A stretch of 64,000 bases of DNA from Octopus sinensis. Taxonomy: Eukaryota. The notes below the pieces were generated by a model that worked only from the letters and a program-made list of their open reading frames with translations, made no database searches and was not told the DNA's origin. Made by a program: the position numbers and the translations under genes. Where the stretch lies: contig NC_043011.1 of the NCBI RefSeq assembly GCF_006345805.1, forward strand, positions 52,650,464 to 52,714,463, given 5' to 3'. The first letter of the stretch is position 1. The number at the start of each line of letters is the position of its first letter. Shown in pieces: positions 875 to 63,615 of this stretch.

Positions 875-1799
875 ATCATCATCATCATCATCATCGTTTA
901 ACGTCCGCTTTCCATGCTAGCATGGGTTGGACGGTTCAACTGGGGTCTGTGAAGCTGGAAGGCTTCATCAGGCCCAGTCAGATCTGGCAGTGTTTCTACG
1001 GCTGGATGCCCTTCCTAACGCCAACCACTCCGTGAGTGTAGTGGGTGCTTTTTATGTGTCACTGACACAGGTGCCAGACGAGGCTGGCGAACAGCCACGC
1101 TCGGATGGTATTTTTTATGTGCCACCGACACAGGTGCCAGACGAGGCTGGTGAACGGCCACGCTCGGATGGTGTTTTTTATGTGCCACCGACACAGGTGC
1201 CAGACGAGGCTGGCGAACGGCCACGCTCGGATGGTGTTTTTTATGTGCCACCAACACAGGTGCCAGACGAGGCTGGCGAACGGCCACGCTCGGATGGTGC
1301 TTTTTATGTGCCACCGACACAGGTGCCAGACGAGGCTGGCGAATGGCCATGCTCGGATGGTGCTTTTTATGTGCCACCGACACAGGTGCTAGACGAGGCT
1401 GGCGAACGGCCATGCTCGGATGGTGCTTTTTATGTGCCACCGACACAGGTGCCAGATGAGGCTGGCGAACGGCCATGCTCGGATGGTGTTTTTTATGTGC
1501 CACCGACACAGGTGCCAGACGAGGCTGGCGAACGGCCACGCTCGGATGGTGTTTTTTATGTGCCACCGACACAGGTGCCAGACGAGGCTGGCGAACGGCC
1601 ATGCTCGGATGGTGCTTTTTATGTGCCACCGACACAGGTGCTAGACGAGGCTGGCGAATGGCCATGCTCGGATGGTGCTTTTTATGTGCCACCGACACAG
1701 GTGCCAGATGAGGCTGGCGAACGGCCATGCTCGGATGGTGCTTTTTATGTGCCACCGACACAGGTGCTAGATGAGGCTGGCGAACGGCCACGCTCGGAT
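875..1799 (-). mobile_element. 5'-truncated RTE LINE 3' end with (GAT)n tail and expanded 63-bp 3'UTR array
   Basis: catcatcatcgtttaacgtcc tail at 875-905. Body matches the 3' end of the RTE copy at 56812-58611. Confidence 0.85.
1044..1799. repeat. 63-bp minisatellite, 12 copies
   Basis: 21-aa periodicity (VPPTQVPDEAGERPRSDGVFY) repeated 12 times in ORF 927-1823. Confidence 0.95.
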
Positions 1800-11036: not shown

Positions 11037-11222
11037 ACCACATGACCATACCAGCGCAGTCGTCTCTCTTGCACACCACATCTGATGCTTCTTAGGTCCA
11101 ACTTTTCTCTCAAGGAGCTTACACTCTGTTGAGTATGCAAACTGACATTACACATCCATCGGATCATACTGGTTTCATTCCTTGCGAGCTTATGCATGTC
11201 CTCAGCATTTTGTCCATTTTTA
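11037..11222 (-). mobile_element. RTE LINE fragment (C-terminal part of ORF)
   Basis: EDMHKLARNETSMIRWMCNVS...RLRWYGHV matches the translation of 57530-57700. Confidence 0.85.
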
Positions 11223-11247
11223 TGCTCTGAGTTTAAATTCATTACTT

Positions 11248-11877
11248 TCAAACACAAGTATCATGTGGTAATTGTTCTGTCCAAGTTGCATACATACTCC
11301 CTTGTCAATCTTGTCATTGTAACAACAATAAAGAAGTGACTGGGTTATTAGAGGCCTGCAAACAATGATGTTATCAAACACTAATATCATGTGGTAATTG
11401 TTCTGTCCAAGTTGCATACATACTCCCTTGTCAATCTCGTCATTGCAACAAAAATAAAGAAGTGACTGGGTTATTAGAGGCCTGCCAACAATGATGTTAT
11501 CAAATACAAATATCATGTGGTAATTGTTCTGTCCCAGTTGGATAAATACTCCCTTATCAATCTCGTCATTGCAACAAAAATAAAGAAGTGACTGGGTTAT
11601 TAGAGGCTTACAAACAATGATGATATCAATCACAAATATCATGTGGTAATTGTTCTGTCCAAGTTGCATACATACTCCCTTGTCAATGTCATCATTGCAA
11701 CAAAAATGAAGAAATGACTGGGTTATTAGAGGCCTGCAAACGATGATGATATCAATCACAAATATCATGTGGTAATTGTTCTGTCCCAGTTGCATAAATA
11801 CTCCCTTATCAATCTCAACATTGCAACAAAAATAAAGAAGTGACTGGGTTAACAGAGACTTGCAAATGATGATGTTA
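11248..11877. repeat. 126-bp minisatellite, 5 copies
   Basis: atcatgtggtaattgttctgtcc recurs at 11260, 11386, 11512, 11638 and 11764. Confidence 0.95.
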
Positions 11878-12001
11878 TGTGATACATAAAACAAAAGTCA
11901 AAGGCACTGTCCATTCTCATCTTCTGACTATTTTGTAAAACATTAAAACAAACACTTTAGTCTTTGCATTTCAATATTGATGTATTTATGAGAAAACTTA
12001 C

Positions 12002-13066: not shown

Positions 13067-14031
13067 CGAGGGGCGTTCAATAAGTAATGCCCCTGACCCA
13101 CTTGCCATTGTTTGATCTAGCTGAAATTTTGCGTGTGCAATTATTGATATCTCTATAGAGTAGGTGGCAAATTACAGCTCTGAACTAATTGGGGTTTCTG
13201 ATTTACAGGTGTTTGAACTGAGTCAAGTGTGAAATGGAGCCTGTTGAGTGTCGAGCAGTGATCTGGTTTTTGTATTTGAAAGGACGCACACCACGGGAGA
13301 CTTTTGATGAAATGAAAGTAACTTATGGTAATGATGCCCCATCATATGACCTTGTAAAACGCTGGCATCGTGGATTCAAACATGGTCGGAACTCGGTGGA
13401 AACAGCTCCCAGATCTGGTCGCCCCCTTCTGCAATTGATGAGGCATCTGTCCGTCAAGTTGAGGCTGCCATTTTGGAACATCGACGCAAACTATTCGCCA
13501 AATAGCCCATGAGGTCAAGATTAGTACCGGGTCTGTGGAAACTATCATTCATGACCATTTGCATATGCAAAAGGTGTCTGCCAGATGGATTTCCAGGTTG
13601 CTCACACCTTTCCAGAAGCAAGAACGCGTCGTGTGCTCGAGGATAAATTTGGAGATGTACCAACTCGCTCCGGTCCACAACTCGCTTGTCGCCAGATCAG
13701 AAGCACAGGCGTATGGCTATGAACTCCTCCCCCATCCCCCTACTTTCCTGACCTTGCACCCTCTGATTTTCACCTCTTTCCAGCCATGAAGTTGTTTTTG
13801 AAAGGAAAGCGTTTCCCAGATGATGCAGCCTTGATTTCTGAAGTCACGTCGTGGTTGGAGGACCAAGCTGGGTCTTCTAAAAAAACGGTCTCCAGAGCTG
13901 TATCAAACGATGGGAGAAATGCGTAACTCTGGGTGGTTCCTATGTAGAGAAAGGCTAATAACTGTGCAATGTTTCGTTACTCTACTGCTATGGGAAGTGG
14001 GTCAGGGGCATTACTTATTGAACGCCCCTCG
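13067..14031 (+). mobile_element. Mariner transposon, internally deleted, with perfect 37-bp TIRs
   Basis: TA|CGAGGGGCGTTCAATAAGTAATGCCCCTGACCCACTT...AAGTGGGTCAGGGGCATTACTTATTGAACGCCCCTCG|TA. Frameshifted transposase MEPVECRAVIWFLYLKG, WISRLLT, HPP-Y-PDLAPSDF. Confidence 0.95.
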
Positions 14032-17778: not shown

Positions 17779-18363
17779 TTCTCTCTCTCTCTCTCTCTCT
17801 CTCACCTCACACTAAGTCATTCCCATTAATTATCATACATTATAGACACAGCCCTCATACATTCCATTCAGTAAGTGGATCCTTAACCCTTTAGCATTCA
17901 GATTATCCTGTCAAATGTAATGCTTATTTATTCAGAATTGTTTTGAATTAATCTTGCATTATCTCAGAGCTTCAAGATTTCAATGATGTGGTTGTTTATT
18001 TCAAGAATGACATTTTAGGGTAGGTGTAAGAAACTGGTTATGGCCAGTTTGAACACAAAACAGATCGAATATTTAGGCCAGATATGGCCAGTTTAAATAA
18101 TAACAGCTAATTTTCCCCTCAATACAGTTTCAAACATCTGCAATCTTATAGTCACTCCAGTCAATGTAAATACTCAACCATAAATCATTAAGTGTTAGTC
18201 ATCTACTCTCTTTTCTTAGTCACTTGACTTGCATGAAATAACAGTCAAATTTCTCTCAAAGTCTAACAGTCTCAAAAGGTAACACATTTGACATGCAACC
18301 TTAGATACACTATATATGAAAATAATATGAGATAGTAAGGCTATTTCTCTAACTTATGAAATC

Positions 18364-25692: not shown

Positions 25693-25913
25693 ACCTTTAG
25701 TGTTCGCATTATTCTGCCAAAATTAATCCTTTTTAATCGACATCGTTTTGAACTAATCATGCATTATCTTGTAGCTATGAGATTTTGATGAGGTAGCTGT
25801 TAATTTTTAAAACGATATTGTAGGGCTGGTGTGAGAGACCAGATCTGGCCAGTTTGAACATAAAACAGACAGAATACTTCTGGCCGGATATGGCCGGTTT
25901 AAATGCTAAAGGG
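25693..25913. mobile_element. piggyBac-type MITE, family B
   Basis: TTAA|ACCTTTAGTGTT...AATGCTAAAGGG|TTAA. Other copy at 47238-47437; decayed copies near 8130, 10650, 17885, 30866 and 35425. Confidence 0.8.
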
Positions 25914-26043
25914 TTAAACAATAATCTAACCATAATTTATAGGATATATTATGTCTTAATTTACTTGAATTAAGCTGAAGATGTACAACTAAATATATTC
26001 ACGAAGAAAATTACTTCTTAAGGAAAAGAAAGCTACTACTTAC

Positions 26044-27638: not shown

Positions 27639-28037
27639 CTGCAGGCAGAAAGACAGAGGGAGGATTATAGACTGATACAGAGAGGACATAAGGTAACAGA
27701 CATAAATAATGATTTCAAGTTTTGGCACAGAGCCAGCATGTTCAGGGCAGTGGGTAAGTCGATTATATTGACCCCAATACTCAACTGGTAATTATTTTAT
27801 CAATCCCATAAAGAATGAAAGACTAAGTTAACCATGGTAGAATTTGAACTCGGGTTGAAATGTTGTTAAGCATTTTGCCTAGCATGATATCGATTCTGTT
27901 AGCTTGCCACACTAAACAGACATATAGACCCAAACTGAAAGTTTAACTTCATTAGCCAAACCATTAACCAAATCCAGTTAGTTCAAGCGTCCCATAAGGA
28001 GGACAAGAAATAGCTTTGGATAATACCCTTCCTTCTC

Positions 28038-28225
28038 ATCATCATCATCGTCGTTTAACGTCCGTTCTCCATGCTAGCATGGGTTGGACGGTTCGACCGG
28101 GGATCTGGGAAGCCAGAAGGCTGCACCAGGCTCCAGTCTTATCTGGCAATGTTTCTACAGCTGGATGCCCTTCCTAACGCCAACCACTCCGTGAGTGTAG
28201 TGGGTGCTTTTTACGTGCCACCTGC
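28038..28225 (-). mobile_element. RTE 3'-end copy, about 40 nt inside intron 3
   Basis: (CAT)n tail and family match. Confidence 0.85.
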
Positions 28226-28267
28226 ACTAAAAAAAAAAAAAAAACAAGAGCTTGTGATAAATCTTAC

Positions 28268-28471
28268 CTTTGAACTGATAAGTAACAAGATGGCAATTGA
28301 AACCCTCACTTTGATGTTCCACTTGCCTTTCGGCCACACATGCTTGCTGATTGCTCTGATGATATCAATTCCAGTCACTTCTTTTGCATTTTTTAAACTG
28401 ATAGAGTTTGTCGATCCAATTGATGCACCGGGATGAAAACATCCTCTCTTTCCAAGGGTCACTGGAAATTG
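28268..28471 (-). CDS. ABCB7: ABCB7 exon 3
   Basis: 204 nt, atacag|..|gtaaga. QFPVTLGKRGCFHPGAS...IIRAISKHVWPKGKWNIKVRVSIAILLLISSK. Confidence 0.93.
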
Positions 28472-29394: not shown

Positions 29395-31449
29395 AATGGT
29401 TTCAAATTTTGGAACAAAGCCAGCAAGTTCGGGGTGTGGGGAGTATGTCGATTACATTGACCCCAGTGCTCAACTGGTACTTATACCTTATCAACCCTGA
29501 AAAGATGGAGAGCAAAACTGACCTTGGCAGAATTTGAACTCAGAATGTAAAGATGAATGAAATGCCGCTAAGCATTTTGCCTGGCACAGTAATGATTCTA
29601 CCAGCTGGTCATAAGTGGGCTGGTTACACCTCTGGCATAGGCCACAAGGTTATGGTCTCACTTGAGCTTGCCGAGTCTTCTCAAGCACAGCATATTTCCA
29701 AAGGTCCCGGTCACTAGTCTATATATATATGTATATATATATATATATATACTGGAGAAAGGGAGGGAAAATTGTTTGGAGTGTTTACTTCTGGTCTTTG
29801 GTATTCTGGGAAGAGTACAAGGAGGTAGTGCTTTGAAATACATTGCCACCCGAGCTGAACTCCACTAAAAGCACCCAAGGGCCAGATAGTGGTATCAAGT
29901 CAGGCAGTATCACATGTCTATCACCTCCTTAGAAAAAGGGGAACATTTTCTACATCACATATAACATGACTTCATCATATTAGAAGAGTGACAGGAGGAA
30001 TAATGAGTTTGCAGGATTGATATATTTTGTCTTAACCATAGCAGCAGTAGCAGTAGCAATAGTAGTAATAACTTGTTACTGTTATCAACAGTGCGGTTAG
30101 TATTTTGTGTCAATGATATGAATATTCATACAGTAATCATTTTCTTATCTCATTTAATGAATTATACACATGTTTGTGCAACTAATGTTGCTTTTTTTTT
30201 GTTGCTATAAACTCTGTCCTGTTTATGGCTAATTTTGGGAGGCATTTCAATTTGTTGTGTACACCATGTTTTTATCAACAAGACATGCACACAGAAAAAA
30301 AAAAAACTCAAAAAAAAAACCCCCCAGACCTTAAAGCATTACTCAGTATGAGAAAAATGTTTCCAGCTCTTTTGTAGAACAATCCAAAAAGGAATAATTT
30401 TCTGTCAGTAAGACAGTGGTAATAAACCAAAATTTTGCAAGTTACAATTATAAGAATCCTGTATACTAAACTTTTGAGGGAGGGGCGCTAGTCAATTACA
30501 TCAATCCCAATATTCAACAGGTACTTGTTTCACTGATTCTGAAAAGATGAAACGTAAAGTCAACCTTGGCAGAATTTGAACTCAGAATGTAAAACTGGAA
30601 GAAATGCTTCAAAGGATTTTGCTACTAAGGTCCGCTGTCTTGATAATAATGATGATGATGGTTCCAAATTTGGGCACAAAGCCAGCAATCTTAGGGGAAG
30701 GGATATGTTGATTACATTAACTCTAATGCTTAACTGGTACTTATTTTATCAACCCTGAAAGGATGAAAGGCAAAGTTGACCTCGGTGGAATTTGATTGAA
30801 CCCAGGATGTAAAACTGAAGGAAATGCTACTAAGCGTTTTTCCTGGCATGCTAACAAAAGCAAAACTTATTTATTCACATTGTTTTGCATTAATCAGGTA
30901 ATGTCTCGTAGCTACAAAACTTTGATGATGTAATTATTTAGTTTTAGAATGATATTGTAGAGTAAGGTATGAGAAGCCAAATATGACCAGTTTGAACTAA
31001 AAACAGGTAGAATAATTTACCCAGATATGATTAGTTTAAATGCTAACAGGTTTAATGCTTCTTTCAGTGGCTTGCTGAGGGTTGGTTATGAGTTTTGAGT
31101 GAAGAACAAATCTTTACTTTTCATTCTTTTGAAGTTGATAAAATAAGTACCAGTTAAGAACTGGGAACTAATGTAATTATTTTACCCCTCCCCTAAAAAT
31201 TGCTTGCTATGTGCCAAAATTTGAAACCATGGCAGCAAGCTGGCAGAAACAGCACACAGGACACAGGTCAAAATGCTTCTCAGCATTTCTTATGACTTAA
31301 CATTTCTGAGTTCAGGTTCCATCAAGGTCACCTTTGCTTTTCATCCTTTCAGGATCAATATAATCAACTACCCTCCACCTTCAAAATTCCAGGCCTTGTG
31401 CTTATCATAGAAAGAATTATTATCATCAAAAGCAGATTGTTGAGAATTC

Positions 31450-31840
31450 AGTACAGATGGGCATGACATGTTTGAATGCAAAATAACTGCATTGCAAAAA
31501 TTCTTTTGTGTGTTCAACAAGTGGAGAGGTTTCCTGGTAAAGGAAGACCCATCCTTAGGTATAGGGAGACGTTGAAACAATCACTATAAGCACTACAACT
31601 TAATTTAAGATTTGGGGAAGTTATTGCCTAGATTGATCTGCATGGCATAAAATGTGTCATAATGCATTTAAACAATTTGAGTTGAAGAAACAGAACAATA
31701 AAAGAATTATATCCTGCAATCAACAGACACATTTGTCCAATCCCAAGCAAAATCAAAATCATCATTGTCCTCATTGTGACTTCATAGCAAAGTCCATACC
31801 TGGACTCAAATTACATTCATGCATCCATTGTGAATAAATG
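31450..31840 (+). mobile_element. Degenerate RTE-clade LINE C-terminus with C2H2 finger
   Basis: WESYCLD*SAWHKMCHNAFKQFE...CPHCDFIAKSIPGLKLHSCIH fits the RTE WE..A.DR..WR / CxxC..S..GL..H...H terminus. Confidence 0.6.
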
Positions 31841-34424
31841 CAGCTTCTTTAGTTTTTTAATCCTTTTTTTTTTAAATCTTCTTTCTAAAACTCATTTGTC
31901 AAAATTGTCAGAGGTGACTTTATCAGTTGAGCACTGGGGGGGTCTCAATCCTCCCCAAAATTTCTGACCTTGTGCCAAAGTTTGAAACCATTATTATTAT
32001 TATTATTATGAAGGCAGTGAGCTGGCAGGCTTGTTAGCATGCCAGGAAAAATGCTTAGTAGCATTTCCTTCAGTTTTACATCCTGGGTTCAATCAAATTC
32101 CACCGAGGTCAACTTTGCCTTTCATCCTTTCAGGGTTGATAAAATAAGTACCAGTTAAGCATTAGAGTTAATGTAATCAACATATCCCTTCCCCTTTCAG
32201 GGTTGATAAAACATTAACAGGAACAAGTTATTACTACTATTGCTACTGCTACTACTGCTGCTATGGTTAAGACAAAACATATCCCTTCCCTTTTCAGGTT
32301 GATAAAATAAGTACCAGTAATCTGAATGCTGAAGGGTTAAAGTCCATCATTACTAATCCACTACTACTGCCAAACTGTTAAGATAACTACTACTGGAAAA
32401 GAACACACATCTGCTAAGAATTGAACAACTCAAATCCATCATAGTCCATTTTGTTACCATGTCACATTTTCTGACACCTAAGGCCATCAAATGCCTTCAT
32501 GTCACTATCAGAGAATGATCAAGTGCCATTTTCACTGCTAGGTTGTCAGTCATGATACCTTTTCTAATTTACTTACAAGCTGCTCTTCTAATCTGGGATT
32601 TGAACTTTGAATGCTCTTGAAGCAGCTATCTGATAGAATCATAAGCACACCAGGCAAAATGCTTAGTGGCATTTTGGCTGTCTTTGTGTTCTGAGTTCAA
32701 ATTCTGCTGAGGTTGATGTTGGCTTTCATTCTTTCAGGGTCAATAAAATAAGTACCAGTCAAGCACTGGAGTCGATGCAATTGACTTTCTCCTCCTCTTG
32801 AAAACTGATAGCCCTGTGCTAAAATTTGGGACCATTATCTCTAGTGCTCTTAATTGCCCTATGTTATTTTCAGGCATAATGTATTTATATGCTGTTCCTC
32901 TTTTAAGATGGTAGGGTGTAATCTGAAGGTGATTTAGCTTATAAGTTACATGAAGCAGCAGTAGCAGTAGTCCTCCTGCTGGTAGTGGTGGTGGTAGTGG
33001 CAACAAGTTTTGCTTTAATTTGTTAATCCAAATAGGTTATGCAATATCTGTACTGTCTACAAGTGTCAACATTGACTGTAGTTCTTGTTGAAGTTGTTTA
33101 TTGTTGTTGTTAACACAATAGGTTTTCTTAGAATTTCTCCTACAACAATTCCCGATATATTGCAATGTAAACCAATTAAACACATGTCTATAATACAGTG
33201 TCTCTGCTATTTATAACAAGGTCTATACACGAACTAATGAATGAGAGAGCCTCCATATGGTCACTGGCACGCTGTCAGTTACGATGACACAGGTTCCAGC
33301 TGATCCAATCAATGGAACAGCCTGCTCTTGAAATTAACGTGCAAGTGGCTGAGCACTCCACAGACACATAAACCCTTCATGTAGTTCACAAAGAGATTCA
33401 GCATGACACAATGTGACATGGCCAGCCTTTTGAATTACAGGTACACCTCATTTTTGCCAGCTGGAGCAATGTGAAATAAAGTGTCTTGCTCAAGGTCACA
33501 ATGCACAGCCAGGAATTGAACTCACGATCATACAATTGTGAGTAGATTACCTCAAACACTAAGCCACGTGCCTTCATGGTCACTAGAACTGCTAGAAATA
33601 GAAGCCAAATTACTTTAAGCATATATTACACAGTTTTGAATGGGATAAATGGATACACTGGATAATGTAGTCTGAGACAGTGCCAATTAATTGTGTCAAG
33701 CATAAATCTTTCTCTCCAGACATTCCATAATTGATTATACCAATAAGTTATTAATCCTATTAATTGTTGGATGAAAAGAAAAATGGAGTTGTAATGTATA
33801 TATATTCTAATCTCTGGGCATTGTTAATTAAAAAACTTTTTCAAAAAATGAAACCTAGCTTTGATTCAGACTTGGCACAGCAACTAATAATTATTAGTTG
33901 ACCTAACGATAATAGTTAAAGCTAATCTCTCTCAGGCCCAGTGTTGTGTGAAATCAGCCGTAACCAAACCATATCATGTCACACTCAAGTTATGCATTCA
34001 TAATTTGTTTTACATTTTTAATAGTTTACTAATTGCTATAATTTAAACATTCTTTCACATATTAATAACAAAACTAAATGACATTTCCAGAACCAGTTTT
34101 CCTCTCTGGAGCCAGAATATAAAACTGAACAATTATCTACCCTCTTCAAGACGCAGGTGTAATCCTCATTAGCAAACAACTTATATAGTAAACTGACTAT
34201 TTCAATAAATTGAAATACCTACTTACCATATAACATTTATGGCTGAGTACTTCACAAACGTGTCTTTTTGTAACCATTAGGTAAATTGAGTGTCATAATT
34301 GAAAATGAGCGCAGAGAAATAATTGAAAGAAACCAGTATCCATGTTTTCAAACAACATGGATAAGTACAGGTATATCAAACACCATATAACATAAATTTT
34401 TGATTTATTAAAATTATCTCCACA

Positions 34425-34822: not shown

Positions 34823-36555
34823 AATCCGGAGGATGCTATCAAATGGCAATGAAAACTAGTTCCACACGAAAAGGGAGTGATAATCTAATCTCAGGAATCA
34901 AGAATTCTTCAAAGTTGAGAAGCCATTAAAGAAAAGGACAAGCTTATTTTCTGGAGCTAAGAGGACAGTCATTTATGCATTTTTCTAGCTCAATAGCTGT
35001 TATCAGCACAGCAATTGCCCAACCATATCTCTTGGTGCTTTAAACTACAGCTAGTCCTTCCAATGGTTTTCTAGTTTCTGCCAATTCAATTTCACTTCAC
35101 AAGGCTTCAGTCTGGTAGCACAATGAACACTTCATTCAACCACATCTATATCCCTATATCTATCACACACAGACACACTCTCTCTCTCTCATGCACCACA
35201 TCACAAAATAATTTTAATGTGGAGCTGATTATATAAACTCTATTTCCTTCATTTATGTGATATTTGATTTTTAAAAATTTAGTCTGTTAAGGAAGGGCAA
35301 TGGTTATAACCTTTAAAGGCCATCTCAAGCTGGAAATGCTGTACGTTGGTGGTATTATTCTGAGAAAAATGTAGGCATGGAAAGAATTCCTAAAAGTTGC
35401 ACTTTTAATCATTTAATATGTAATCCTTTAGCATTCAGCTTATTCTCTCAATTGTAATGCTTATTTATTGTTTTGAATTTATCATGTATTATCTCATGGC
35501 TTCAAGATTTTGATAATTAATTTAAGGATAACAATTAAGAAAAAAAAACGAAAGGCTAAAACGAAAGCAAAAACTCAAAACAAAAACAAAACGAATAATT
35601 TTAGACACACGCGTAACAATTAAATTAATTTAACAATTAAGAAAAAAGAAACGAAAGGCTAAAATTTAGGGTGAGGGTTAGTGACAGGATGTTGTCTCAG
35701 TTTTAGGCACAGCAAATGATTTTAGCTCAATAGAGGCCATAGGATTGGTTAAAATTCGAAAAATTAAACTACGTTAAACTTTAAAATTACAATTTTCTCA
35801 AGAAAGCCAAGAGAAAAATTTTTTTTATTTTGACACATTCTACCAGTATACGAAGTTTAAAAGTGTTTAGTTAATTAGAAATTGTGTTGAAAACTGCCGT
35901 TCAAAAGGAAAAGATCCCTGTTTTCTCTTAAAGGGTACATGATCAAGAAACGAGTGCCTTCCTATTTCAGTATTTACAACAGTAGATAATCTGTATATTA
36001 TGATATAGTTTCATTTTTTAATATTTCATTTTATTAACATATAAAGCGCGATAGGCGACGACCGTGGACATTAGGCACAGGTCAACAGGCGACGATCGTG
36101 GCCCAGATAGATGCATTTGATTTAGGGGCGTTTGTTGAAATGTCAGTCAAAAAATAGTTCAACTAATGTCTTTTCAGATGATGTAAAACTTGCCACATTA
36201 TATACTAAGAAGATATTTAAACTATTTTTTGTTTTTTATGTGTGCATGGTAGTTGTCATTTTCATGAAATGTGCTCAGCAGTCCATGCTATGTGAGTGCA
36301 AATCCCAGCGCTTTATGGGTTAAAGCGGCGTGCTGAAGAATCTTTAGCACGCCGGGCTTAGCGGCACTTCGTCTGTATTTACGTTCTGAGTTCAAATTCC
36401 GCCGGAGTTGACTTTGACTTTCATCCTTTCGGGTCGATAAAATAAGTACCAGTTAAACACTGAGGATCGGTTTAATCGACTTAGCCTCTCCCCAAACCTG
36501 TTGGCCTTGTGCCATATATATATATATTATATATATATATATGTGTGTGTGTGTG

Positions 36556-36750
36556 TGCAGGTGGCACGTAAAAAGCACCCACTACACTTACGGAGTGGTT
36601 GGCGTTAGGAAGGGCATCCAGCTGTAGAAACATTGCTAGATAAGACTGGAGCCTGGTGTAGCCATCTGGCTTCCCAGATCCCCGGTCGAACCGTCCAACC
36701 CATGCTAGCTTTGAGAACGGACGTTAAACGATGATGATGATGATGATGAT
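36556..36750 (+). mobile_element. RTE 3'-end copy
   Basis: ggacgttaaacgatgatgat tail. Confidence 0.85.
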
Positions 36751-38585: not shown

Positions 38586-38741
38586 CATTGGTTTGAACCA
38601 TATTGTCTGGTATGGTTTGTTTCGACAAGATCGCAATAATCTGGTAGCTTGGAAAGCTGATTTCGATTGATTTAGAGAATAAATAAGTTCAGAAGAAATA
38701 CTCCAGTCGATGTGTGCCGAGCGAAATAATGCAGTGGCCAT
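38586..38741 (-). CDS. ABCB7: Probable ABCB7 coding exon 1 (mitochondrial targeting peptide)
   Basis: gagATGG start, 156 nt, phase-0 donor ATG|gtgaga. MATALFRSAHIDWSISSELIYSLNQSKSAFQATRLLRSCRNKPYQTIWFKPM is Arg/Ser/Leu-rich. Lies in a CpG-retaining region. Confidence 0.75.
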
Positions 38742-47237: not shown

Positions 47238-47437
47238 CCCTTTAGTGTTCGCATTATTCTGCCAAAATTAATCCTTTTTTATCCACATTGTTTTGAACTA
47301 ATCATGCATTACCTTGTAGCTATGAGGTACCTGTTAATTTTTTAAACAATATTGTAGGGTTGGTGTGAGAGACCAGATAGGGCTAGTTTGAACATAAAAC
47401 AGGTAGAATATTTTTGGCCGGTTTAAATGCTAAAGGG
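47238..47437. mobile_element. piggyBac-type MITE, family B
   Basis: TTAA|CCCTTTAGTGTT...AATGCTAAAGGG|TTAA. Confidence 0.82.
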
Positions 47438-47769
47438 TTAAATCAGTTTTTCTCTTCAAAAAATTATCTTGTGACATTATATGGTTATGTGGCATGTTTG
47501 CCTCCCTACCACATGGTTTTGGATTCAGTCCCACAGTGTGGCACCTTGGGTAAGTGTCTTTTACCACAGTCCCATGCCAACCAAAGTCTTGTGAATGGAA
47601 ATGGAGAGAAGCCTGTCGTATATGTTTGAATGTGTGCATGTTATTGTCTACCTTGTCATTTTCATTGTAATCACACTGTGTATGTCTGCTTGTCTGTCCT
47701 TGTAATTGTCCCCTCTGTGGCCAATAAAAGAAAATTGTGTTATTGTCTACTTGTCTTGATATTTTTTAG

Positions 47770-48013
47770 TCCGGTGGCACGTAAAATGCACCAATCCGAT
47801 CGTGGCCGTTGCTAGCCTCACCTGGCACCTGTGCAGGTGGCACGTAAAAAGCACCCACTACACTCACGGAGTGGTTGGTGTTAGGAAGGGCATCCAGCTG
47901 TAGAAACACTGTCAGATCAGACTGGAGCCTGGTGCAGCCCCTGGCTTCCCAGATCTCCGATCGAACCGTTCAACCTATGCTAGCATGGAGAACGGACGTT
48001 AAACGATGATGAT
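47770..48013 (+). mobile_element. RTE 3'-end copy
   Basis: Family match with (GAT)n tail. Confidence 0.85.
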
Positions 48014-48544
48014 GTGAGAGTCAGTCATGCAAGTGGAGTCTTTCATTTTCAATTGTCCAAGACATGTCTGGTCATGGGGAATTATTACCTTACTTGGAAA
48101 CAGGAAGGGCAACTGGCAGTAGAAAATCTGGCCCAACAAATTCAATCCAACCCTTGCAAACATGGAAAAATAAATGTCAAAATGATTTTACTTCAATATC
48201 TGGAACTTTGCATGTAGTTAAAGGCCACTATTTTGAGAACCATTGAGACAAAAGTTAACTTAATCAACAATGTTCTGTGCTATTGAAGAACATTTAAGTC
48301 TTTGATCTCAGCATTTGCATATTTATTGGGACAGAGAAACAGAATTCCTAAATATGTTGATCTAAACAATAGAAGAGTAAATGTGCTGATGGTACTGACT
48401 AAGTGTTCTCGGCAAGCTCCATATAATTTTTTTTCTTCACCATACAGTGACCCATGCAAGTAGGGAAAAGTGGACACTAAAACGATGATGAGAGGTTATG
48501 GGCATTCAGTATACAGTTCCTCTGGAAATATTGAGTGAATAATT

Positions 48545-49565: not shown

Positions 49566-50689
49566 AAAAAAAAAGGAAAGGGGGAGGTTACTTTATCTTC
49601 AACTATTTATTCTCGATTTGTAACAACTTCTTTAAGTAAAAAATCTATCTACAGATCTGTAAGCTTACACTACCGAAACATGTCTATAGTTGACACTGGC
49701 TTGCAAATAAAAAAATTTTGAAAAACACAGAATTCTCTCTGAAAGGAAATTAACTGGAGAAGTTTTTTAATGACTTAAAGAATTATCTCCCTTCTTCTTT
49801 GTTGCTGAAAAATCTCCACCAATTTTTTTCTTCTAACTTTAAAATATAATTCGTTTTCGAGCACTCACTTATTTATATGTATCGGCATAAGATATAAAAG
49901 TTACCGAGAAATAAAAGGGTGTCGCTCTCAGTGTTAGAAATGCGACTACGACACTATTATTTGGCCATCCACACATATTGCTGTGTAAAGCAAACAAGTC
50001 ACATTTCATCATTAAAAAAAAAAAATATTAATATAGACACAGTGGATGATGTCCTAGATTATATACTTCGTATTAAAATTAGATAGAATGGCTTTGGCTG
50101 GAATACCTTTGGTCGTAAATCTGGTCGATTAGGATTAATACTCCTGGAAGTTATTTAACAACAATATACAACCACCTTACACGAGGAACGGTAATGGTTT
50201 AAATTAACCAGTCTGACGAGGTTTGAAAGGAAAGCCGGTGTCTTTAATAATTGATAGAACCTCACAACAGCCGTTTCTCTCTACTCGGAAACTTTTTTTA
50301 TTGCGTGTTAAATAGCAATGTTTTAAATGATCGATTAAAAGTGAAGATGATGTATCCAGAATTTGTGAATATCCATCATTCTTCCAGCTTTCGTTTATCT
50401 TTTTGCTTTTTTTTTTAAGTAAATAAAGATGGGTTTATGGTAAAGAGTGAGTGAGCAATGCCGTTTTTATTTGACTTTTTATACGTGTGTATATATCGTG
50501 TATATTTATTCATATAACGTTTTTTTGTTACAGATATGTTATATAACAATTAAATCAAGGAAAACTCGTGATCACCATTTAAAATACATGTGTTTTATTC
50601 ACTTTCGTGCATGGACAGCTTAATTCATTTTAAGTATAACCGGTTGTTTAGGATACGTGGCTATTTAAATCACATGGAGAGTAATTGAG

Positions 50690-50970
50690 TACGTAGACGA
50701 GACTAAGAGAGGTGGTGAGATGGCGGGGGCGACGTCGAGAGAATGTTTGAATGAAACAGTGTAAGAGGGAGGAAGAGAGTGCTAGATATCATCATCATCA
50801 TCATAAGCAGCAGCAGTATAGTCTATTCACATATCGCGCGCGCGCACATCCCCCGTCTCCACCATCGTCTTTACCACTAGAGTACGATTCTCCGTCACTG
50901 TCTTCCCTTCCCCGTCGACGGGGAAATTTGTCAAGACAAGCGTCAGTGTCTTTATGGCAAGCGTGCTACC
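50690..50970 (+). promoter_or_regulatory. CpG-rich promoter/5'UTR of UPRT
   Basis: High CpG density, a YY1-like gagATGGCGG at about 50720 and a (CG)5 run at about 50836, directly before the strong Kozak gctaccATGG. Confidence 0.5.
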
Positions 50971-51092
50971 ATGGAGCCAGACCTTATTCAAACTGCCCCC
51001 TGTATTGTAAAAGATGAAGAATACGGACCGCAACTAAAAGTTTTGAAAAATACTAACAATATCAAAGAACTGCAGACGTTTTTACGCGATAA
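50971..51092 (+). CDS. UPRT: Uracil phosphoribosyltransferase homolog, first coding exon
   Basis: accATGG start after an in-frame stop at 50878. MEPDLIQTAPCIVKDEEYGPQLKVLKNTNNIKELQTFLRDK matches animal UPRT (human IGAQLKLLPMNDQIRELQTIIRDK). Phase-2 donor AA|gtaaga. Exon 2 not found in window. Confidence 0.88.
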
Positions 51093-51703
51093 GTAAGATT
51101 CTCTTTTTTTTTTTTTTCTGTTAACCTTCTATCTTTGTAATTATACGGGAAGTAGCGAATTCCATTGTAAAAAATCTCAAGGCCAGTTTTTTTTTATTTA
51201 AAAAAAATCTATAGAGAATCGATGATAATATTACTGTCTCGAATTGGATTCGAACTCAGAACTGCGAGAAGCGAAATTGTTAAAATGTTAAAACATTTAA
51301 CTCTGCGCTTTACTATTTGTGTTTGTTTAAAATTAATTTGAAGATAATTGCATTTTTTATGAGTCGAGAACTAAGTCAATTTCTTGCAAGGTTTCCCAAT
51401 TAACTAGTTGAATCGAATCGAAGCGATGTAATAATTATATATATATATATATATATATAAAGTATGAACGGTCTTCCGATGGGTGAAAGAAAACCCGATC
51501 AAGCGGGTTTTGTATGGCGAAACCCGTGAGAATCATTTAATTAGTTTCAGCATTTAATCTGCACCTCTTTTTATTTACGTATGTGTAAAACAAAAACTTT
51601 GGCATTCTTCAAAATTCACGCATGTGTTTGAAGTATTTATTGCTTCTAAGCTTGATGGGGGTCGAAAGATTAAGCGAGTATCTTTAGATTAAACTTAAGA
51701 TAA

Positions 51704-56811: not shown

Positions 56812-58611
56812 TTGTACACAGAAGAATTCAAAGTAGAGGTTGGGGTCCACCAGGGTTCAATACTCAGCCCCCTCTTATTTATCATAGTCCTCCAGGCAAT
56901 TACGGAGGAATTCAAGACAGGTTGTCCCTGGGAGCTCCTCTACGCTGACGACCTTGCTCTTATTGCTGAGTCACTATCAGAGCTGGAGGAGAAGTTCCAG
57001 TGTGGAAGGAGGGTTTAGAATCGAGGGGCCTTAGAGTCAACCTAGCTAAAACCAAAGTACTAATAAGTAGGAAGGTAGACAATCCACAAATGTCTTCAGG
57101 AAGATGGCCCTGCTCGATCTGTAGAAAAGGTGTAGGTAGAAACTCTATAAGATGTACCCAGTGTAAGCTATGGACACATAAGAGGTGCAGCAATGTCAAA
57201 GGTAGGCTAACTGGGAAGATAGTTTTTGTTTGTGGCAGATGCTCAGGAGCATTAACCTCCGAAAATCTGCAGAAAATAACTTCCGTCACTTTCCAAGGGG
57301 AAAAACTAGAAGTAGTTGATAGCTTCCGTTATCTAGGTGACCAAGTCAGTAGTGGGGGTGGGTGCGCTGAAAGTGTAACTGCTAGAATAAGAATAGCCTG
57401 GGCAAAGTTTAGGGAGCTCTTACCTCTGCTGGTGACTAAAGGCCTCTCACTCAGAGTAAAAGGCAGACTGTATGATGCGTGTGTACGAACAGCCATGCTA
57501 CATGGCAGTGAAACATGGGCCGTGACTGCCGAGGACATGCGTAAGCTCGTGAGGAATGAAGCCAGTATGCTGCGATGGATGTGTAATGTCAGTGTGCATG
57601 CTCGACAGAGCGTTAGCACCTAGAGAGAAATGTTGTACCTAAGAGGCATCAGTTGTGGTGTGCAAGAGAGACAATTGCGCTGGTATGGCCATGTGGCGAG
57701 AATGGATGAAGATAGGTGTGTGAGAAAGTGCCAATCCTTAGCAGTTGAGGGAACCCGTGGAAGAGGTAGACCCAGGAAAACCTGGGACAAGGTGGTGAAG
57801 CACGACCTTCGAACTTTAGGCCTCACTGAGGAAATGACCAGCGACCGAGACCTTTGGAAATATTCTGTACGTGAGAAGACCAGGCAGGACAAGTGAGCCC
57901 AGCCCACTTATGAATGCCTTTCCTCCCTTGGACACAAAGACCTGTTGAGGCAAGCGAAGTCGATATAGAACCTCATCCGACGACAGGCACCCATGCCAAC
58001 CCCTTTTGCTTGCGAAGACATGTTGGGGCAAGCGAAATCGAAATCGAATTGAACCAGCCAGGATCCCTGGTCTGGTGGTACGTAAAAAGCACTATCCGAC
58101 TCGTGGCCTATGCCAGCGCCGCCTCCACTGGCTTCCGGGCCGGTGGCACGTAAAATACACCAATCTGACCATACGACAGGCACCCATGCCAACCCCCTTT
58201 GCTTGCGAAGACATGTTGGGGCAAGCGAAATCGAAATCGAATTGAACCAGCCAGGATCCCTGGTCTGGTGGTACGTAAAAAGCACTATCCGACTCGTGGC
58301 GTAAAAAGCACTGTCCGACTCGTGGCCGATGCCAGCACCGCCTCGTCTGGCTTCCGTGCCGGTGGCACATAAAATACACCAATCCGACCGTGGCCGTTGC
58401 CAGCCTCGCCTGGCACCTGTGCAGGTGGCACGTAAAAAGCACCCACTACACTCACGGAGTGGTTGGCGTTAGGAAGGGCATCCAGCTGTAGAAACACTGC
58501 CAGATAAGACTGGAGCCTGGTGCAGCCTTCTGGCTTCCCAGATCCCCGGTTGAACCGTCCAACCCATGCTAGCATGGAGAACGGACGTTAAACGATGATG
58601 ATGATGATGAT
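56812..58611 (+). mobile_element. 5'-truncated RTE-clade LINE (RT C-terminal half, 3'UTR, (GAT)n tail)
   Basis: VGVHQGSILSPLLF, LLYADDLAL, FRYLGD, WAKFREL, RLRWYGHV, RGRGRPRKTW. Frameshifts near 57000 and 57630, stop at 57621. Confidence 0.95.
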
Positions 58612-60278: not shown

Positions 60279-61703
60279 CAGGGTGTGTAAGGTATTTGAG
60301 GACATACTTTTTGGGGTCATTACTGCATTTTTTTGCTAACTCTGTATAATCTTTGTTTCAGGAAATAATAACGGCAGGCCCTCAGCTTACTCAAGAAATG
60401 ACGATGCATGCTGTTATTTTGGTTATAAAGGCTAAGCTTAGTGATTTAGAAATATCTCAATTATTAAAAGTTGCCAGATCTTTCATCTACAAATTTTGTA
60501 AAGAGCTAGAGACTGAAGATGGAAATGTATCACCAGTATCAGAACATAAAAAGCATTCTAAACGCTCTGAAACCGTCAGAACATCTGAATTTATCCAGCA
60601 AGTTCTACAGACCATTGATTACAATCCCAGAGAGTCCATGAGGTCAGTTGCAAAAGAACTTCATGTGTCAGAAGGAATAGTCAGAAATGTTGTCCACAAA
60701 AACATCAGATATAGTCTTAAATGATGAGGAAAGGTCAATTTGTAAGAAAAAGCGAAAGAAAATCACTACATCAGATCTAAAAGGCTTTTAAACTGAAAAA
60801 TCCAGTAGAAAATTTGATTTGGTGTTTACTCAAATGAGAAAAACTTCGACCAAGATCAGAAAGTTAACTAAAGAGATGACAGATGGTTCTGAAGTTCCAA
60901 GTGTTATGCATACAAAATTTCCTGCAACTGTCCTGGCTTTAGGGGTTGTCAGCAATAAAGGATGTGATGCCTCTTGACTTCTTTCCATAAGGCCTTAGAG
61001 TTAACTCTGCCACCTACATTGAGACCTTGGAAATTATTGTTAAACCCTGGATAGACAGTGTATGCAATGGAAGGCCATATGTGTTTCAGTAAGACTCTGC
61101 ACTATCACTCATAGCTCTACTAACACAGGAATGGATGGCTGAAAATTTTCACAATCACATAACCCCTGACATTTGGCCTCCTAATTCCCCAGATCTCAAT
61201 CCATTGGACTAATACATGTGGGGCAGTTGTTGAGAAAGAGATGTCAATGAACATACCCATAATAACAAAAGCTGCCATAGTCAGAGTAATGTTCAGAATG
61301 TGCAGGTGGCACGTAAAAAGCACTCACTACACTCACGGAGTGGTTGGCGTTAGGAAGGGCATCCAGCTGTAGAAACACTGCCAGATAAGACTGGAGCCCT
61401 GGTGCAGCCTTCTGGCTTCCCAGGTCCCCAGTCGAACCGTCCAACACATGCTAGCATGGAGAACGGACGTTAAACGATGATGATGATGATGAACCAGGAC
61501 TACTGGATTCTACAATGTAGATGATTTAAATCTCATATAGAAGCAGTTGTTGCAGCTGAAGGTGGCTTTATTGAATAACATTATAGAAAAGAAGGTTTAT
61601 TTTTATCCTCATAGCATTTTTTGATAAATAAAGTTATTATCTGTTATTATATATTTGTTTTGTTATAAACATAAATCTGTCCTCAAATGTCTTACACACC
61701 CTG
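60279..61703 (+). mobile_element. Tc1/mariner-superfamily transposon, probably DD37D (maT), inactivated
   Basis: TA|CAGGGTGTGTAAGGTATTTGAGGACA and TGTCCTCAAATGTCTTACACACCCTG|TA (24/26). Motifs S(N)EKNFDQDQKVN, FQ*DSA, WPPNSPDLNPLD. Confidence 0.88.
61300..61491 (+). mobile_element. RTE 3'-end copy nested in the maT transposase
   Basis: Interrupts AAIVRVM...NQD; (GAT)n tail fused to atgaacc. Confidence 0.88.
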
Positions 61704-62819: not shown

Positions 62820-63615
62820 CATCCTATCTATCTATCTAACCGCTCAGTCGAAGTTGACTCTCGGTTACTCGTTGGATCAGTATCCTCCAGTCAGTTCTAT
62901 CCTGGGCCACTTCTTTCAGATTGGCTATGTCCATTCCGGTATCACCCTTGATGGTGTCAAGCAGGCGGGTTCTTGGTTGGCCTCTTCCTCTCTTGCCACT
63001 GACCATTCCGAGCATGATGTCCTTCGTGTCCTCCAGTCAGTTCTATCCTGGGCCACTTCTTTCAGATTGGCTATGTCCATTCTGGTATCACTCTTGATGG
63101 TGTCAAGCCAGCGGGTTCTTGGTCGGCTTCTTCCTCTCTTGCCACTGACCATTCCGAGCATGATGTCCTTCGTGTCCTCCAGTCAGTTCTATCCTGGGCC
63201 GCTTCTTTCAGATTGGCTATGTCCATTCTGGTATCACTCTTGATGGTGTCAAGCCAGCGGGTTCTCGGTCGGCCTCTTCCTCTCTTGCCACTGACCATTC
63301 CGAGCATGATGTCCTTCGTGTCCTCCAGTCAGTTCTATCCTGGGCCACTTCTTTCAGATTGGCTATGTCCATTCTGGTATCACTCTTGATGGTGTCAAGC
63401 CAGCGGGTTCTCGGTCGGCTTCTTCCTCTCTTGCCACTGACCATTCCGAGCATGATGTCCTTCGTGTCCTCCAGTCAGTTCTATCCTGGACCGCTTCTTT
63501 CAGATTGGCTATGTCCATTCTGGTATCACTCTTGATGGTGTCAAGCCAGCGGGTTCTCGGTCGGCCTCTTCCTCTCTTGCCACTGACCATTCCGAGCATG
63601 ATGTCCTTCTCCTTT
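62820..63615 (-). mobile_element. BovB-like RTE 3' end with a 146-bp segment tandemly repeated about 5 times
   Basis: KDIMLGMVSGKRGRGRPRTRWLDTI...QDRTDWR then ILIQRVTESQLRLSG* and a (GATA)n tail. Units start at 62885, 63031, 63177, 63323 and 63469. Confidence 0.85.

Follow-up and report, generated by a model that had tools for sequence, protein, structure and literature searches.

A probable derived 1.17-kb inversion with an inverted SINE duplication and templated filler in the putative first intron of octopus ABCB7

Inserts made by polymerase-theta end joining typically range from a few to about 30 nt, their templates lying no more than some tens of bases from the break. In the Drosophila melanogaster group inverted duplications were found at the breakpoints of 17 of 29 inversions, with lengths between 46 bp and 1.9 kb and a median of 321 bp (Ranz et al. 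2007, PMC1885836). In the human germline and in tumours inverted templated insertions with microhomology and multi-part switching have been described and attributed to MMBIR, for which the search signature is an insertion of at least 10 bp with its template within 100 bp (Osia et al. 2021, PMC8421209). At the RNA level editing in metazoans falls mainly on repeat pairs that are young and have diverged little, Octopus bimaculoides being included among the species studied (Zhang et al. 2023, PMC9989829).

In the present analysis a locus of Octopus sinensis was characterized in a stretch of 64,000 nucleotides of contig NC_043011.1, the whole of which is designated as the window, and the features of the locus are collected in Table 1. 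The integrity of two transposable elements supports the reading of this sequence as derived, with a 1.17-kb segment inverted, 165 bp of breakpoint sequence duplicated in inverted orientation, and templated filler added. Like the Drosophila inversions (PMC1885836), the locus carries the sequence of one breakpoint at both inversion ends in inverted orientation (165 nt, identical at 164/165, which is within the range found there), together with a second breakpoint that is simple; unlike them, the octopus inversion is 1.17 kb long rather than cytologically visible, and part of a SINE, not a gene, is duplicated. A joint with a 122-nt multi-part templated filler, as found in the octopus, is not predicted by the staggered-break model of the same study (PMC1885836).

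Table 1. Features of the locus and of the putative ABCB7 exons, in window coordinates
Feature	Position	Strand	Basis or remark
Putative ABCB7 exon 2, QFPVTLGK…ILLLISSK	28268..28471	-	ORF; phmmer; splice sites and phase
Template, single-copy, AGC/AGT-rich tract	30019..30084	+	source of the inverted copy at the right junction
SINE tail (…AAGATTGCTGGCTTTGTGCCCAAATTTGGAACCAT(CAT)n(TAT)n)	30640..30692	-	left copy only; MAFFT; reconstruction aligned end to end
Left arm, SINE body copy B'	30693..30857	-	164/165 complementary to 32031-32195; 165 nt
Left-junction filler AA, 2 nt (putative)	30858..30859		MITE and SINE alignments
MITE remainder, family positions from about 28 up to the right end (TTAA)	30860..31055	+	blastn and MAFFT
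Rest of the flipped segment, non-repeat sequence and older SINE fragments	31056..32007		putative orientation, from the split elements
SINE head (ATGAAGGCAGTGAGCTGGCAGGC)	32008..32030	+	right copy only; MAFFT alignment
Right arm, SINE body copy B	32031..32195	+	165 nt; partner of the left arm
Filler piece 1, re-copied SINE interior	32196..32211	+	equals 32129-32144, reverse complement of 30744-30759
CAT, 3 nt with no assignable template	32212..32214		exact-match parse
Filler piece 2, inverted copy of 30025-30084	32215..32277	+	blastn and base-by-base alignment
Filler piece 3, second "SINE end + SINE interior" junction	32278..32297	+	compare 32181-32200
Filler piece 4, SINE interior GTTGATAAAATAAGTACCAGT	32298..32318	+	equals 32135-32155, exact over 21 nt
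MITE left terminus (TTAACCCTTCAGCATTCAGATTA)	32318..32340	-	inverted relative to the remainder; family alignment
Candidate ABCB7 exon 1, 52 codons, ATG to GTGAG donor	38586..38741	-	putative

The SINE was compared by MAFFT alignment of 13 copies. In the right copy the head is followed by the body and the family tail is lost after 32195; the left copy, on the minus strand, consists of body and tail, with unrelated sequence at the expected position of the head. Aligned to full-length copies, either of them alone stops short, and the joined element of 241 nt runs end to end (for the copy c20738, positions 8-220 against 4-222). The proposal of the initial annotation, that a single SINE was split with its head on the right and its tail on the left only, is therefore upheld by both the 13-copy alignment and the joined element's full length. 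The reconstructed SINE is bordered on one side by the (TTA)n tail of an older SINE and on the other by a further SINE's head. A target-site duplication of the SINE was considered as a third proof of the ancestral order and was uninformative, any duplication being hidden in simple repeats. The tRNA origin of the SINE is presumed; in this region ARAGORN found nothing, and the Rfam search for structured RNA gave sub-threshold chance hits only.

The single mismatch between the arms is located at 30836, where the left arm has G and the reverse-complemented right arm has A, and TCAA, a private 4-nt insertion in the alignment of SINE copies, is common to both. The identity of the right SINE copy to the 29 other SINE matches in the window is 71–86%, and apart from the arms no inverted pair lying within 5 kb in the 64-kb window reaches both 92% identity and 100 nt. 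The arms are read as a duplication of one diverged SINE copy, and the earlier description of the arms as inverted, matching at 164/165 nt and well diverged from the SINE family, is in agreement with these values. "Recent", when applied to the inversion, means roughly 0.02–4.7 My.

The same arms could be ascribed, with no inversion at all, to a pair of SINE insertions, independent of each other and oppositely oriented, one truncated at its 5' end and the other at its 3' end, which were gene-converted or belong to a very young subfamily. The 5' truncation of SINEs is common, and young families with 96–98% identical dispersed copies are present in the window, for example 28036-28227 and 58419-58610. 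However, the remaining copies in the window do not exceed 86% identity to the arms, the identity of the arms ends exactly at complementary truncation points, and a 5'-truncated SINE inserted in the MITE should have MITE sequence on both sides, which is absent. Since this explanation also leaves unaccounted for both the templated filler and the splitting of the MITE at the same two junctions, it is considered extremely improbable, and independent insertion and gene conversion alike were rejected on these grounds. NAHR between pre-existing inverted repeats was also rejected as the sole cause, because the copies are complementary truncations of one element; it may have acted only as a second step.

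The other split element belongs to a family with at least 5 copies in the window, including the split one, of about 190–225 nt each, whose ends are TTAACCCTT[C/T]AGCATT on the left and AATGCTAA[A/C]AGG(G)TTTAA on the right. Being multi-copy, short and non-coding, with TTAA-ended inverted repeats, this element is a TTAA-target MITE, putatively piggyBac-like. Its terminus, 32318-32340 on the minus strand, agrees with that of the family in 22/23 positions, where 0 matches are expected by chance, and its remainder was compared with the copies 17883-18106, 25732-25917, and 47274-47443, the first of which is contiguous across the split point. The MITE is thus split into parts of opposite orientation, as was initially claimed, with the correction that the remainder, which had been placed from 30866, probably starts at 30860 according to the alignment with family copies. 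About 4 nt of the MITE are missing.

When 30858-32030 is un-flipped in silico, the full 241-nt SINE and a MITE lacking about 4 nt are obtained together. Because one flip repairs two unrelated elements, the segment appears to be reversed relative to the ancestral order. Older SINE fragments are found inside it (31112-31230, 31225-31420, and the tail 31957-32007), and a Pfam scan of a 61-aa ORF in the flipped segment gave no family.

The filler at the right junction totals 122 nt. Piece 1 was entered via a 3-nt microhomology, CCT, and 32193-32211 equals SINE positions 32126-32144 at 19/19. Piece 2 differs from 30084-30025, base by base, by 1 substitution and one 3-nt insertion, and blastn aligns 32215-32283 to 30084-30019 with 64/69 identical positions (E=6e-22). 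Compared with 32181-32200, piece 3 has one C>T and one G lost; the longer stretch 32276-32307 copies 32179-32211, which spans the junction between arm and filler. Around piece 4 the match extends over 32297-32318, equal to SINE positions 32134-32155 (22/22). Since the junction of SINE end to SINE interior occurs twice, the newly made DNA itself appears to have been re-copied. This parse agrees with the first description of the junction as built of SINE pieces copied a second time and of 30025-30084 in inverted copy, the latter with 1 substitution and 1 trinucleotide slip.

All five copied pieces, that is, the SINE body copy B and the four filler pieces, agree in polarity, being inverted with respect to 30019-30857, and the templates of the template switches, at least 6 in number, all lie inside 30019-30857 or in the inverted copy thereof. 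Microhomology is seen as GTTGATAA (8 nt), common to the SINE piece and 30082-30089 and offset by an 8-nt patch, as AA.ATATC (7/8) where the copying returns to the SINE, and as T/TAA at the MITE; the exceptions are the left junction with its 2-nt filler and the template-less CAT (3 nt). A signature of error-prone synthesis was also considered and gained no support, since the excess of differences in the filler (4 in about 120 nt versus 1 in 165 arm nt) is non-significant (Fisher p=0.17), so that, as against MMBIR, point mutations near the octopus joints are not significantly enriched.

These junctions also bear on the possibility of an assembly artefact, in which the spacer between the near-identical 165-bp arms was mis-oriented or the whole junction is chimeric. 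A 164/165 inverted repeat does make the orientation of the spacer ambiguous in short-read graphs, and the locus is represented by one assembled sequence; however, there are no Ns or gaps in the window and no second structure of this kind in the 64 kb, while a patchwork of templated pieces of 16–63 nt with microhomology is a signature of repair and atypical of assemblers. The artefact is accordingly judged improbable, and the inverted duplication and the filler stay real even if the spacer is mis-oriented.

A complex mutation by serial template switching in the putative ABCB7 intron 1, with the flip in the same event or later, is probably the right explanation of the locus. The derived inversion by serial template switching was already put forward in the initial annotation, and it fits everything that could be tested, including the repair of both elements, the duplicated arms, the templated filler, and the apparent microhomology at most switches. 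Template-switch or snap-back synthesis from a single MITE break is favoured because all five pieces are inverted and come from one strand of 30019-30857, and no more than about 4 nt separates the point of entry in the MITE from the point of exit, suggesting one initiating lesion there. The mechanism that we favour is serial template switching of either the MMBIR/FoSTeS kind or the long snap-back end-joining kind.

From the anatomy and the templating, which are read directly, we infer the break site, the order of the jumps, and the kind of enzyme. The ancestral order would have been the left flank, a complete SINE on the minus strand (tail-body-head), old repeats over about 0.95 kb, a complete TTAA MITE, likewise on the minus strand, and the right flank. 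The initiating break would have occurred inside the MITE, about 23–27 nt from its left end, and repair synthesis would have jumped repeatedly, mostly at microhomologies, along one strand 1.2–2.3 kb leftward, copying in turn the 165-nt SINE body, 16 nt of SINE interior, 63 nt of the single-copy sequence 30025-30084, 20 nt repeating the junction just made, and 21 nt of SINE interior, before rejoining to the other side of the MITE break. In the product the 1.17-kb interval bounded by the SINE body on one side and the break in the MITE on the other (30858-32030) would be flipped, the SINE body would stand at both ends as a 165-bp inverted repeat, fillers of 2 nt on the left and 122 nt on the right would remain, and about 4 nt of the MITE would be lost; the flip may belong to the same event as the copying or to a later exchange between the two new arms.

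A strictly two-step course is conceivable, and we hold it as a tentative second choice. Here repair of the MITE break would have inserted 289 nt of templated, inverted sequence (TT, SINE body, and filler), leaving the SINE intact, and the 1.17-kb spacer would have been flipped later via homologous exchange or replication template switching between the 165-bp arms; as a corollary, the locus could be a polymorphic flip-flop. In accordance with this, un-flipping of 30858-32030 yields an intact SINE and a MITE with one compact insertion and about 4 nt lost, all inserted pieces have snap-back polarity, and the 164/165 arms are long enough for homologous exchange. However, two events are needed where one suffices, the sequence bears no crossover mark, and the final sequence is identical to that of the one-step model, and hence two steps are not favoured.

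Serial template switching finds parallels in both of the repair pathways mentioned. As in polymerase-theta snap-back joining, the octopus inserts are inverted and of the same strand, the microhomologies are short, and the nascent junction 32181-32200 was re-copied at 32278-32297; such re-copying of fresh junction sequence suggests repeated cycles of annealing, extension, and dissociation. The sizes are, however, outside those of polymerase theta, with pieces of 165 and 63 nt and templates 1.2–2.2 kb away. With MMBIR/FoSTeS the locus shares inverted copies of nearby templates, multi-part insertions, apparent microhomology or near-homology at the switches, and products of the "in-place inversion" type, but it departs from the MMBIR signature by templates up to about 2.2 kb away, pieces of 16–165 nt, and a 2-nt untemplated filler (PMC8421209).

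The layout of the locus, whose second breakpoint is near-blunt, also corresponds to the Drosophila scenario of one staggered and one simple break, in which 165 bp falls within the range of 46 bp to 1.9 kb (PMC1885836). For the octopus this would mean a cut-and-paste inversion, with nicks 165 nt apart around the SINE body that were filled in, a second double-strand break in the MITE, re-ligation of the fragment in reversed orientation by end joining, and a 122-nt filler made by polymerase-theta-type synthesis. Such a course requires two simultaneous lesions 1.2 kb apart and 165 bp unwound, and alone it fails to explain why the filler pieces are all inverted and of the same strand as the duplication template, which makes it rather unlikely.

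Regarding the gene context, the putative exon 2 was matched by phmmer to the human ABCB7 chains 7vgf and 23pi (E=1.7e-4). The candidate exon 1, which lies in a region of high CpG observed/expected ratio, gave no family in the Pfam scan and is without homology support. Both exons possess consensus splice sites with matching phase 0, which places the locus in the putative ABCB7 intron 1; the same position had been assigned initially, and the minus-strand exons with their phase-compatible splice sites speak for it. A protein search with the concatenated ABCB7 exon translations returned non-cephalopod relatives only, the best of them from a gastropod with 70% identity; exact-product look-ups of two ORFs, one of which spans the left junction, found no record, and no relative turned up when metagenomes were scanned with the exon 2 peptide.

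Since ABCB7 lies on the minus strand, a stem between the arms is predicted to form in its unspliced RNA. When a minus-strand segment of 1701 nt is folded to minimum free energy, 163/165 cognate arm pairs are formed, with a stem energy of -303 kcal/mol, and the predicted structure in unspliced ABCB7 RNA is a 165-bp stem with one C·A mismatch and a 1.17-kb loop. Of the 165-bp perfect pre-mRNA duplex originally suggested, the length holds for the predicted stem and the perfection does not, the arms matching at 164/165. The presence of both arms in one transcript would follow from the putative intron 1 position, the minus-strand exons, and the splice sites. On this prediction the stem is a plausible target of ADAR hyper-editing. 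It resembles the paired intronic repeats edited by ADAR (PMC9989829) in having two inverted copies in one putative transcription unit with predicted intramolecular pairing, but differs from them in that the octopus pair comes from local duplication, not from two transpositions, and its editing is a prediction only. The arms are 99% identical versus 72–85% for ordinary SINE pairs in the window. A long RNA hairpin in the unspliced transcript is the only effect of the inversion that is likely.

In summary, the event is a clear but ordinary case of a known mutation class which is well described in flies and humans; the inversion is intronic and touches no exon, and its importance is illustrative, not conceptual. 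Two old transposons serve here as built-in markers of the ancestral order, making the rearrangement readable step by step, and the locus illustrates that a near-perfect intragenic inverted repeat can arise by DNA repair or replication, without two transposon insertions. In a cephalopod-type genome about 12% of the DNA consists of SINEs and RNA is edited extensively, and in such SINE-rich, heavily editing genomes events of this kind could add unusually strong dsRNA substrates. A much bolder hypothesis, which at present seems a long shot, is that long-range snap-back or template-switch repair regularly supplies octopus genes dense in SINEs with near-perfect hairpins in their introns, the ABCB7 stem being young, maybe polymorphic and flipping, and hyper-edited or diced as RNA. 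If true, it would offer a direct view of how new dsRNA substrates originate by a route other than transposition in a lineage renowned for its RNA editing.

Repeat scanning of the region reported the two arms of the locus, the inverted SINE bodies listed in the table, as 165 nt each and 99% complementary, and scripted comparison placed their sole mismatch at 30836. When the SINE family was matched across the whole window, 29 further copies or fragments showed only 71-86% identity to the right copy, so the arms are not typical of a young SINE family, in agreement with the initial annotation, which had described near-identical inverted arms diverged from their family. Whole-window self-comparison revealed no second inverted pair with at least 92% identity over at least 100 nt and at most 5 kb apart; in other repeat families copies reached 96-98% identity, and therefore the high arm identity is no proof by itself.

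More informative is the structure of the SINE itself. In a MAFFT alignment of 13 copies the right copy possesses head and body and departs from the family consensus past 32195, and the minus-strand left copy possesses body and tail, with unrelated sequence at the expected head position. A TCAA insertion is common to the left and right copies and private to both arms. The right head and body joined to the left tail make a 241-nt element; its alignment with full-length copies runs from one end to the other, whereas that of either half stops short; the proposal that one SINE had been split in two is thus well founded. Once the ancestral order is reconstructed, three SINEs in one orientation follow each other head to tail (31957-32007; 32008-32195 plus 30640-30692; 30495-30639), each having landed at its predecessor's A/T-rich tail or edge, and therefore any target-site duplication is hidden.

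The second split element is a MITE with at least four other copies in the window. The match of its left terminus was reached in 0 of 100 shuffles at equal stringency, copy 17883-18106 is uninterrupted across the split point, and comparison with the family shows a loss of only about 4 nt at the split. The claimed separation of the MITE ends onto opposite strands stands, with the refinement that the remainder probably begins at 30860 and that AA at 30858-30859 is probably filler. A single flip of 30858-32030 makes the SINE whole again and the MITE nearly so; the repair of two unrelated elements by one operation strongly supports a derived origin of today's order, as had been suggested. Judged from its sequence, the locus is an inversion with one breakpoint duplicated in inverted orientation and the second near-blunt. 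Of 29 Drosophila inversions, 17 are reported to have this layout (PMC1885836). The assembly may have put the spacer, the flipped segment, between two identical arms in the wrong orientation; however, such an error would leave the inverted duplication and the filler standing.

Features of the locus and other elements of the window
Feature	Positions	Strand	Description
Present layout			left flank, tail-body / AA / MITE remainder, spacer, head-body / filler / MITE end, right flank
Left arm	30693-30857	-	SINE body
Right arm	32031-32195	+	SINE body
SINE head	32008-32030	+	ATGAAGGCAGTGAGCTGGCAGGC; on right copy, family alignment
SINE tail	30640-30692	-	on left copy, family alignment
MITE remainder	30860-31055		short family with TTAA-bearing inverted ends
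MITE left terminus	32318-32340	opposite to remainder	22/23 positions match family
Filler piece	32196-32211		SINE interior copied again; entry via 3-nt CCT overlap
Filler piece	32212-32214		CAT, no assigned template; outside the four copied pieces
Filler piece	32215-32277		reverse complement of 30084-30025; 1 substitution and one 3-nt slip in AGC/AGT tract
Filler piece	32278-32297		repeat of the odd SINE end to SINE interior junction of 32181-32200, 2 changes
Filler piece	32298-32318		SINE interior once more; MITE end next
Candidate ABCB7 exon 1	ATG 38741, GTGAG donor after 38586	-	window of high CpG observed/expected
Dispersed repeat, ~190 nt	28036-28227, 58419-58610, 61300-61492, 36555-36746, 47831-48020		young family, 93-98% identical; ORF-like reading …LDALPNANHSVSVVGAFYVPPAQVPGEAG…
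63-nt array	1044-1799		GC-rich, ~12 units, 92-96% alike; several frames open
146-nt array	62880-63609		5 units, 94-98% alike; minus strand encodes MLGMVSGKRGRSRPRTRWLDTIKSDTRMDIANLKE… in each
CpG-rich region	50250-51500		AT-rich, CpG observed/expected 1.1-1.9 (window maximum), promoter-like
Mariner/Mos1-type remnant	13234-13512	+	transposase N-terminus in ABCB7 intron; Pfam HTH_48, E=3e-10
GC-rich block	57000-58600		retroelement-like ORFs
Direct repeat, 128 nt	57980-58107, 58173-58300		99.2% identity
61-aa ORF	31652-31837	+	in flipped spacer; Cys/His-rich motif at end (…HHCPHCDFIAKSIPGLKLHSCIHCE)
224-aa ORF	11220-11894	-	~5 tandem 44-48-aa units (…NNYHMIFVIDIIIVCKPLITQSLLYFCCNDEIDKGV…); tandem DNA repeat in ABCB7 intron

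The 122-nt filler of the right junction (32196-32317) was parsed to its whole length into pieces, which bears out the earlier description of a patchwork of SINE fragments and an inverted unique segment. Flanking the switch to 30084 are 8 nt, GTTGATAA, over which the SINE piece and 30082-30089 are identical, and AA.ATATC is common to both sides of the switch back to the SINE; the apparent excess of filler errors over the arms did not reach significance (p=0.17). One and the same strand of 30019-30857 is copied, in inverted form, in the duplicated body and in each of the four filler pieces, a junction formed within the event was re-copied in turn, and about 4 nt separate the MITE entry and exit points, which suits an origin of the whole event in one lesion there. 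These three features argue for copying over cut-and-paste. The layout is also compatible with a staggered break, which leaves the common polarity of the filler unexplained. Under copying, a break in the MITE would be followed by extension of its 3' end on the strand to the left, with serial template switching guided mostly by microhomology. An MMBIR/FoSTeS-like mechanism, with which the template switching of the filler is comparable (PMC8421209), or a long form of snap-back end joining is favoured, which supports the serial template switching proposed in the initial annotation. Plain snap-back may first have produced an intact SINE with a 289-nt insertion in the MITE, after which the flip would require exchange between both new arms, or switching at a fork could yield the inversion directly; the two routes are not separable, because the final sequence is the same by either.

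A recent study of Octopus vulgaris repeats (Jukes-Cantor distances of 0.09 for 25 My and 0.2 for 56 My; PMC13282606) implies a rate of about 0.0036 per site per My, at which one substitution per 165 nt of arm dates the duplication to about 0.8 My (Poisson range 0.02-4.7 My), an apparent age that gene conversion between the arms could bring below the true one.

Minus-strand ORFs of the window include clear ABCB7 segments, which retrieved ABCB7/ATM1-family proteins in database search, and ORF 28211-28495 matches the beginning of human ABCB7 structure chains. The candidate exon 1 joins acceptor 28472/28471 in phase 0. Since exons, splice sites and phase agree, the locus would lie, as previously placed, within the 10.1-kb intron 1 of ABCB7, with the minus strand as transcript. 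No cephalopod counterpart was obtained by protein search, exact-product look-ups of the ORFs or metagenome scan. The CpG-rich region, where a clear coding exon was not recognised, precedes the candidate exon 1 by about 12 kb on the upstream side.

Several other repeats were recorded in the window. One copy of the ~190-nt family sits in intron 2, with 41 nt between it and the inferred exon 2 upstream, and the family has sequence kinship with the 63-nt array, whose Pfam hits were dismissed as low-complexity noise. The product of the 146-nt units looks like a repeated retroelement-derived tail, and Pfam scan assigned the array no family. In the GC-rich block a PHD finger is matched weakly (E=4e-5), slightly short of the Pfam cut-off. 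The 61-aa ORF gave no Pfam match in the scan; its motif resembles those that terminate some retroelement ORFs.

The event adds a neat case, in non-coding sequence, to a well-known class of complex rearrangements. When 1701 nt of minus-strand RNA were folded, 163 of the 165 arm positions paired with their cognate partners in a predicted stem of about -303 kcal/mol; the long pre-mRNA duplex of the initial annotation is retained, but owing to one C·A mismatch it is not perfect. Many weaker inverted SINE pairs are already present in the same intron according to the repeat scan. Because nearby inverted repeat copies form the double-stranded RNA that receives most A-to-I editing in animals, an octopus among them, and young copies are the most heavily edited (PMC9989829), it is a reasonable prediction that the stem is an ADAR target.
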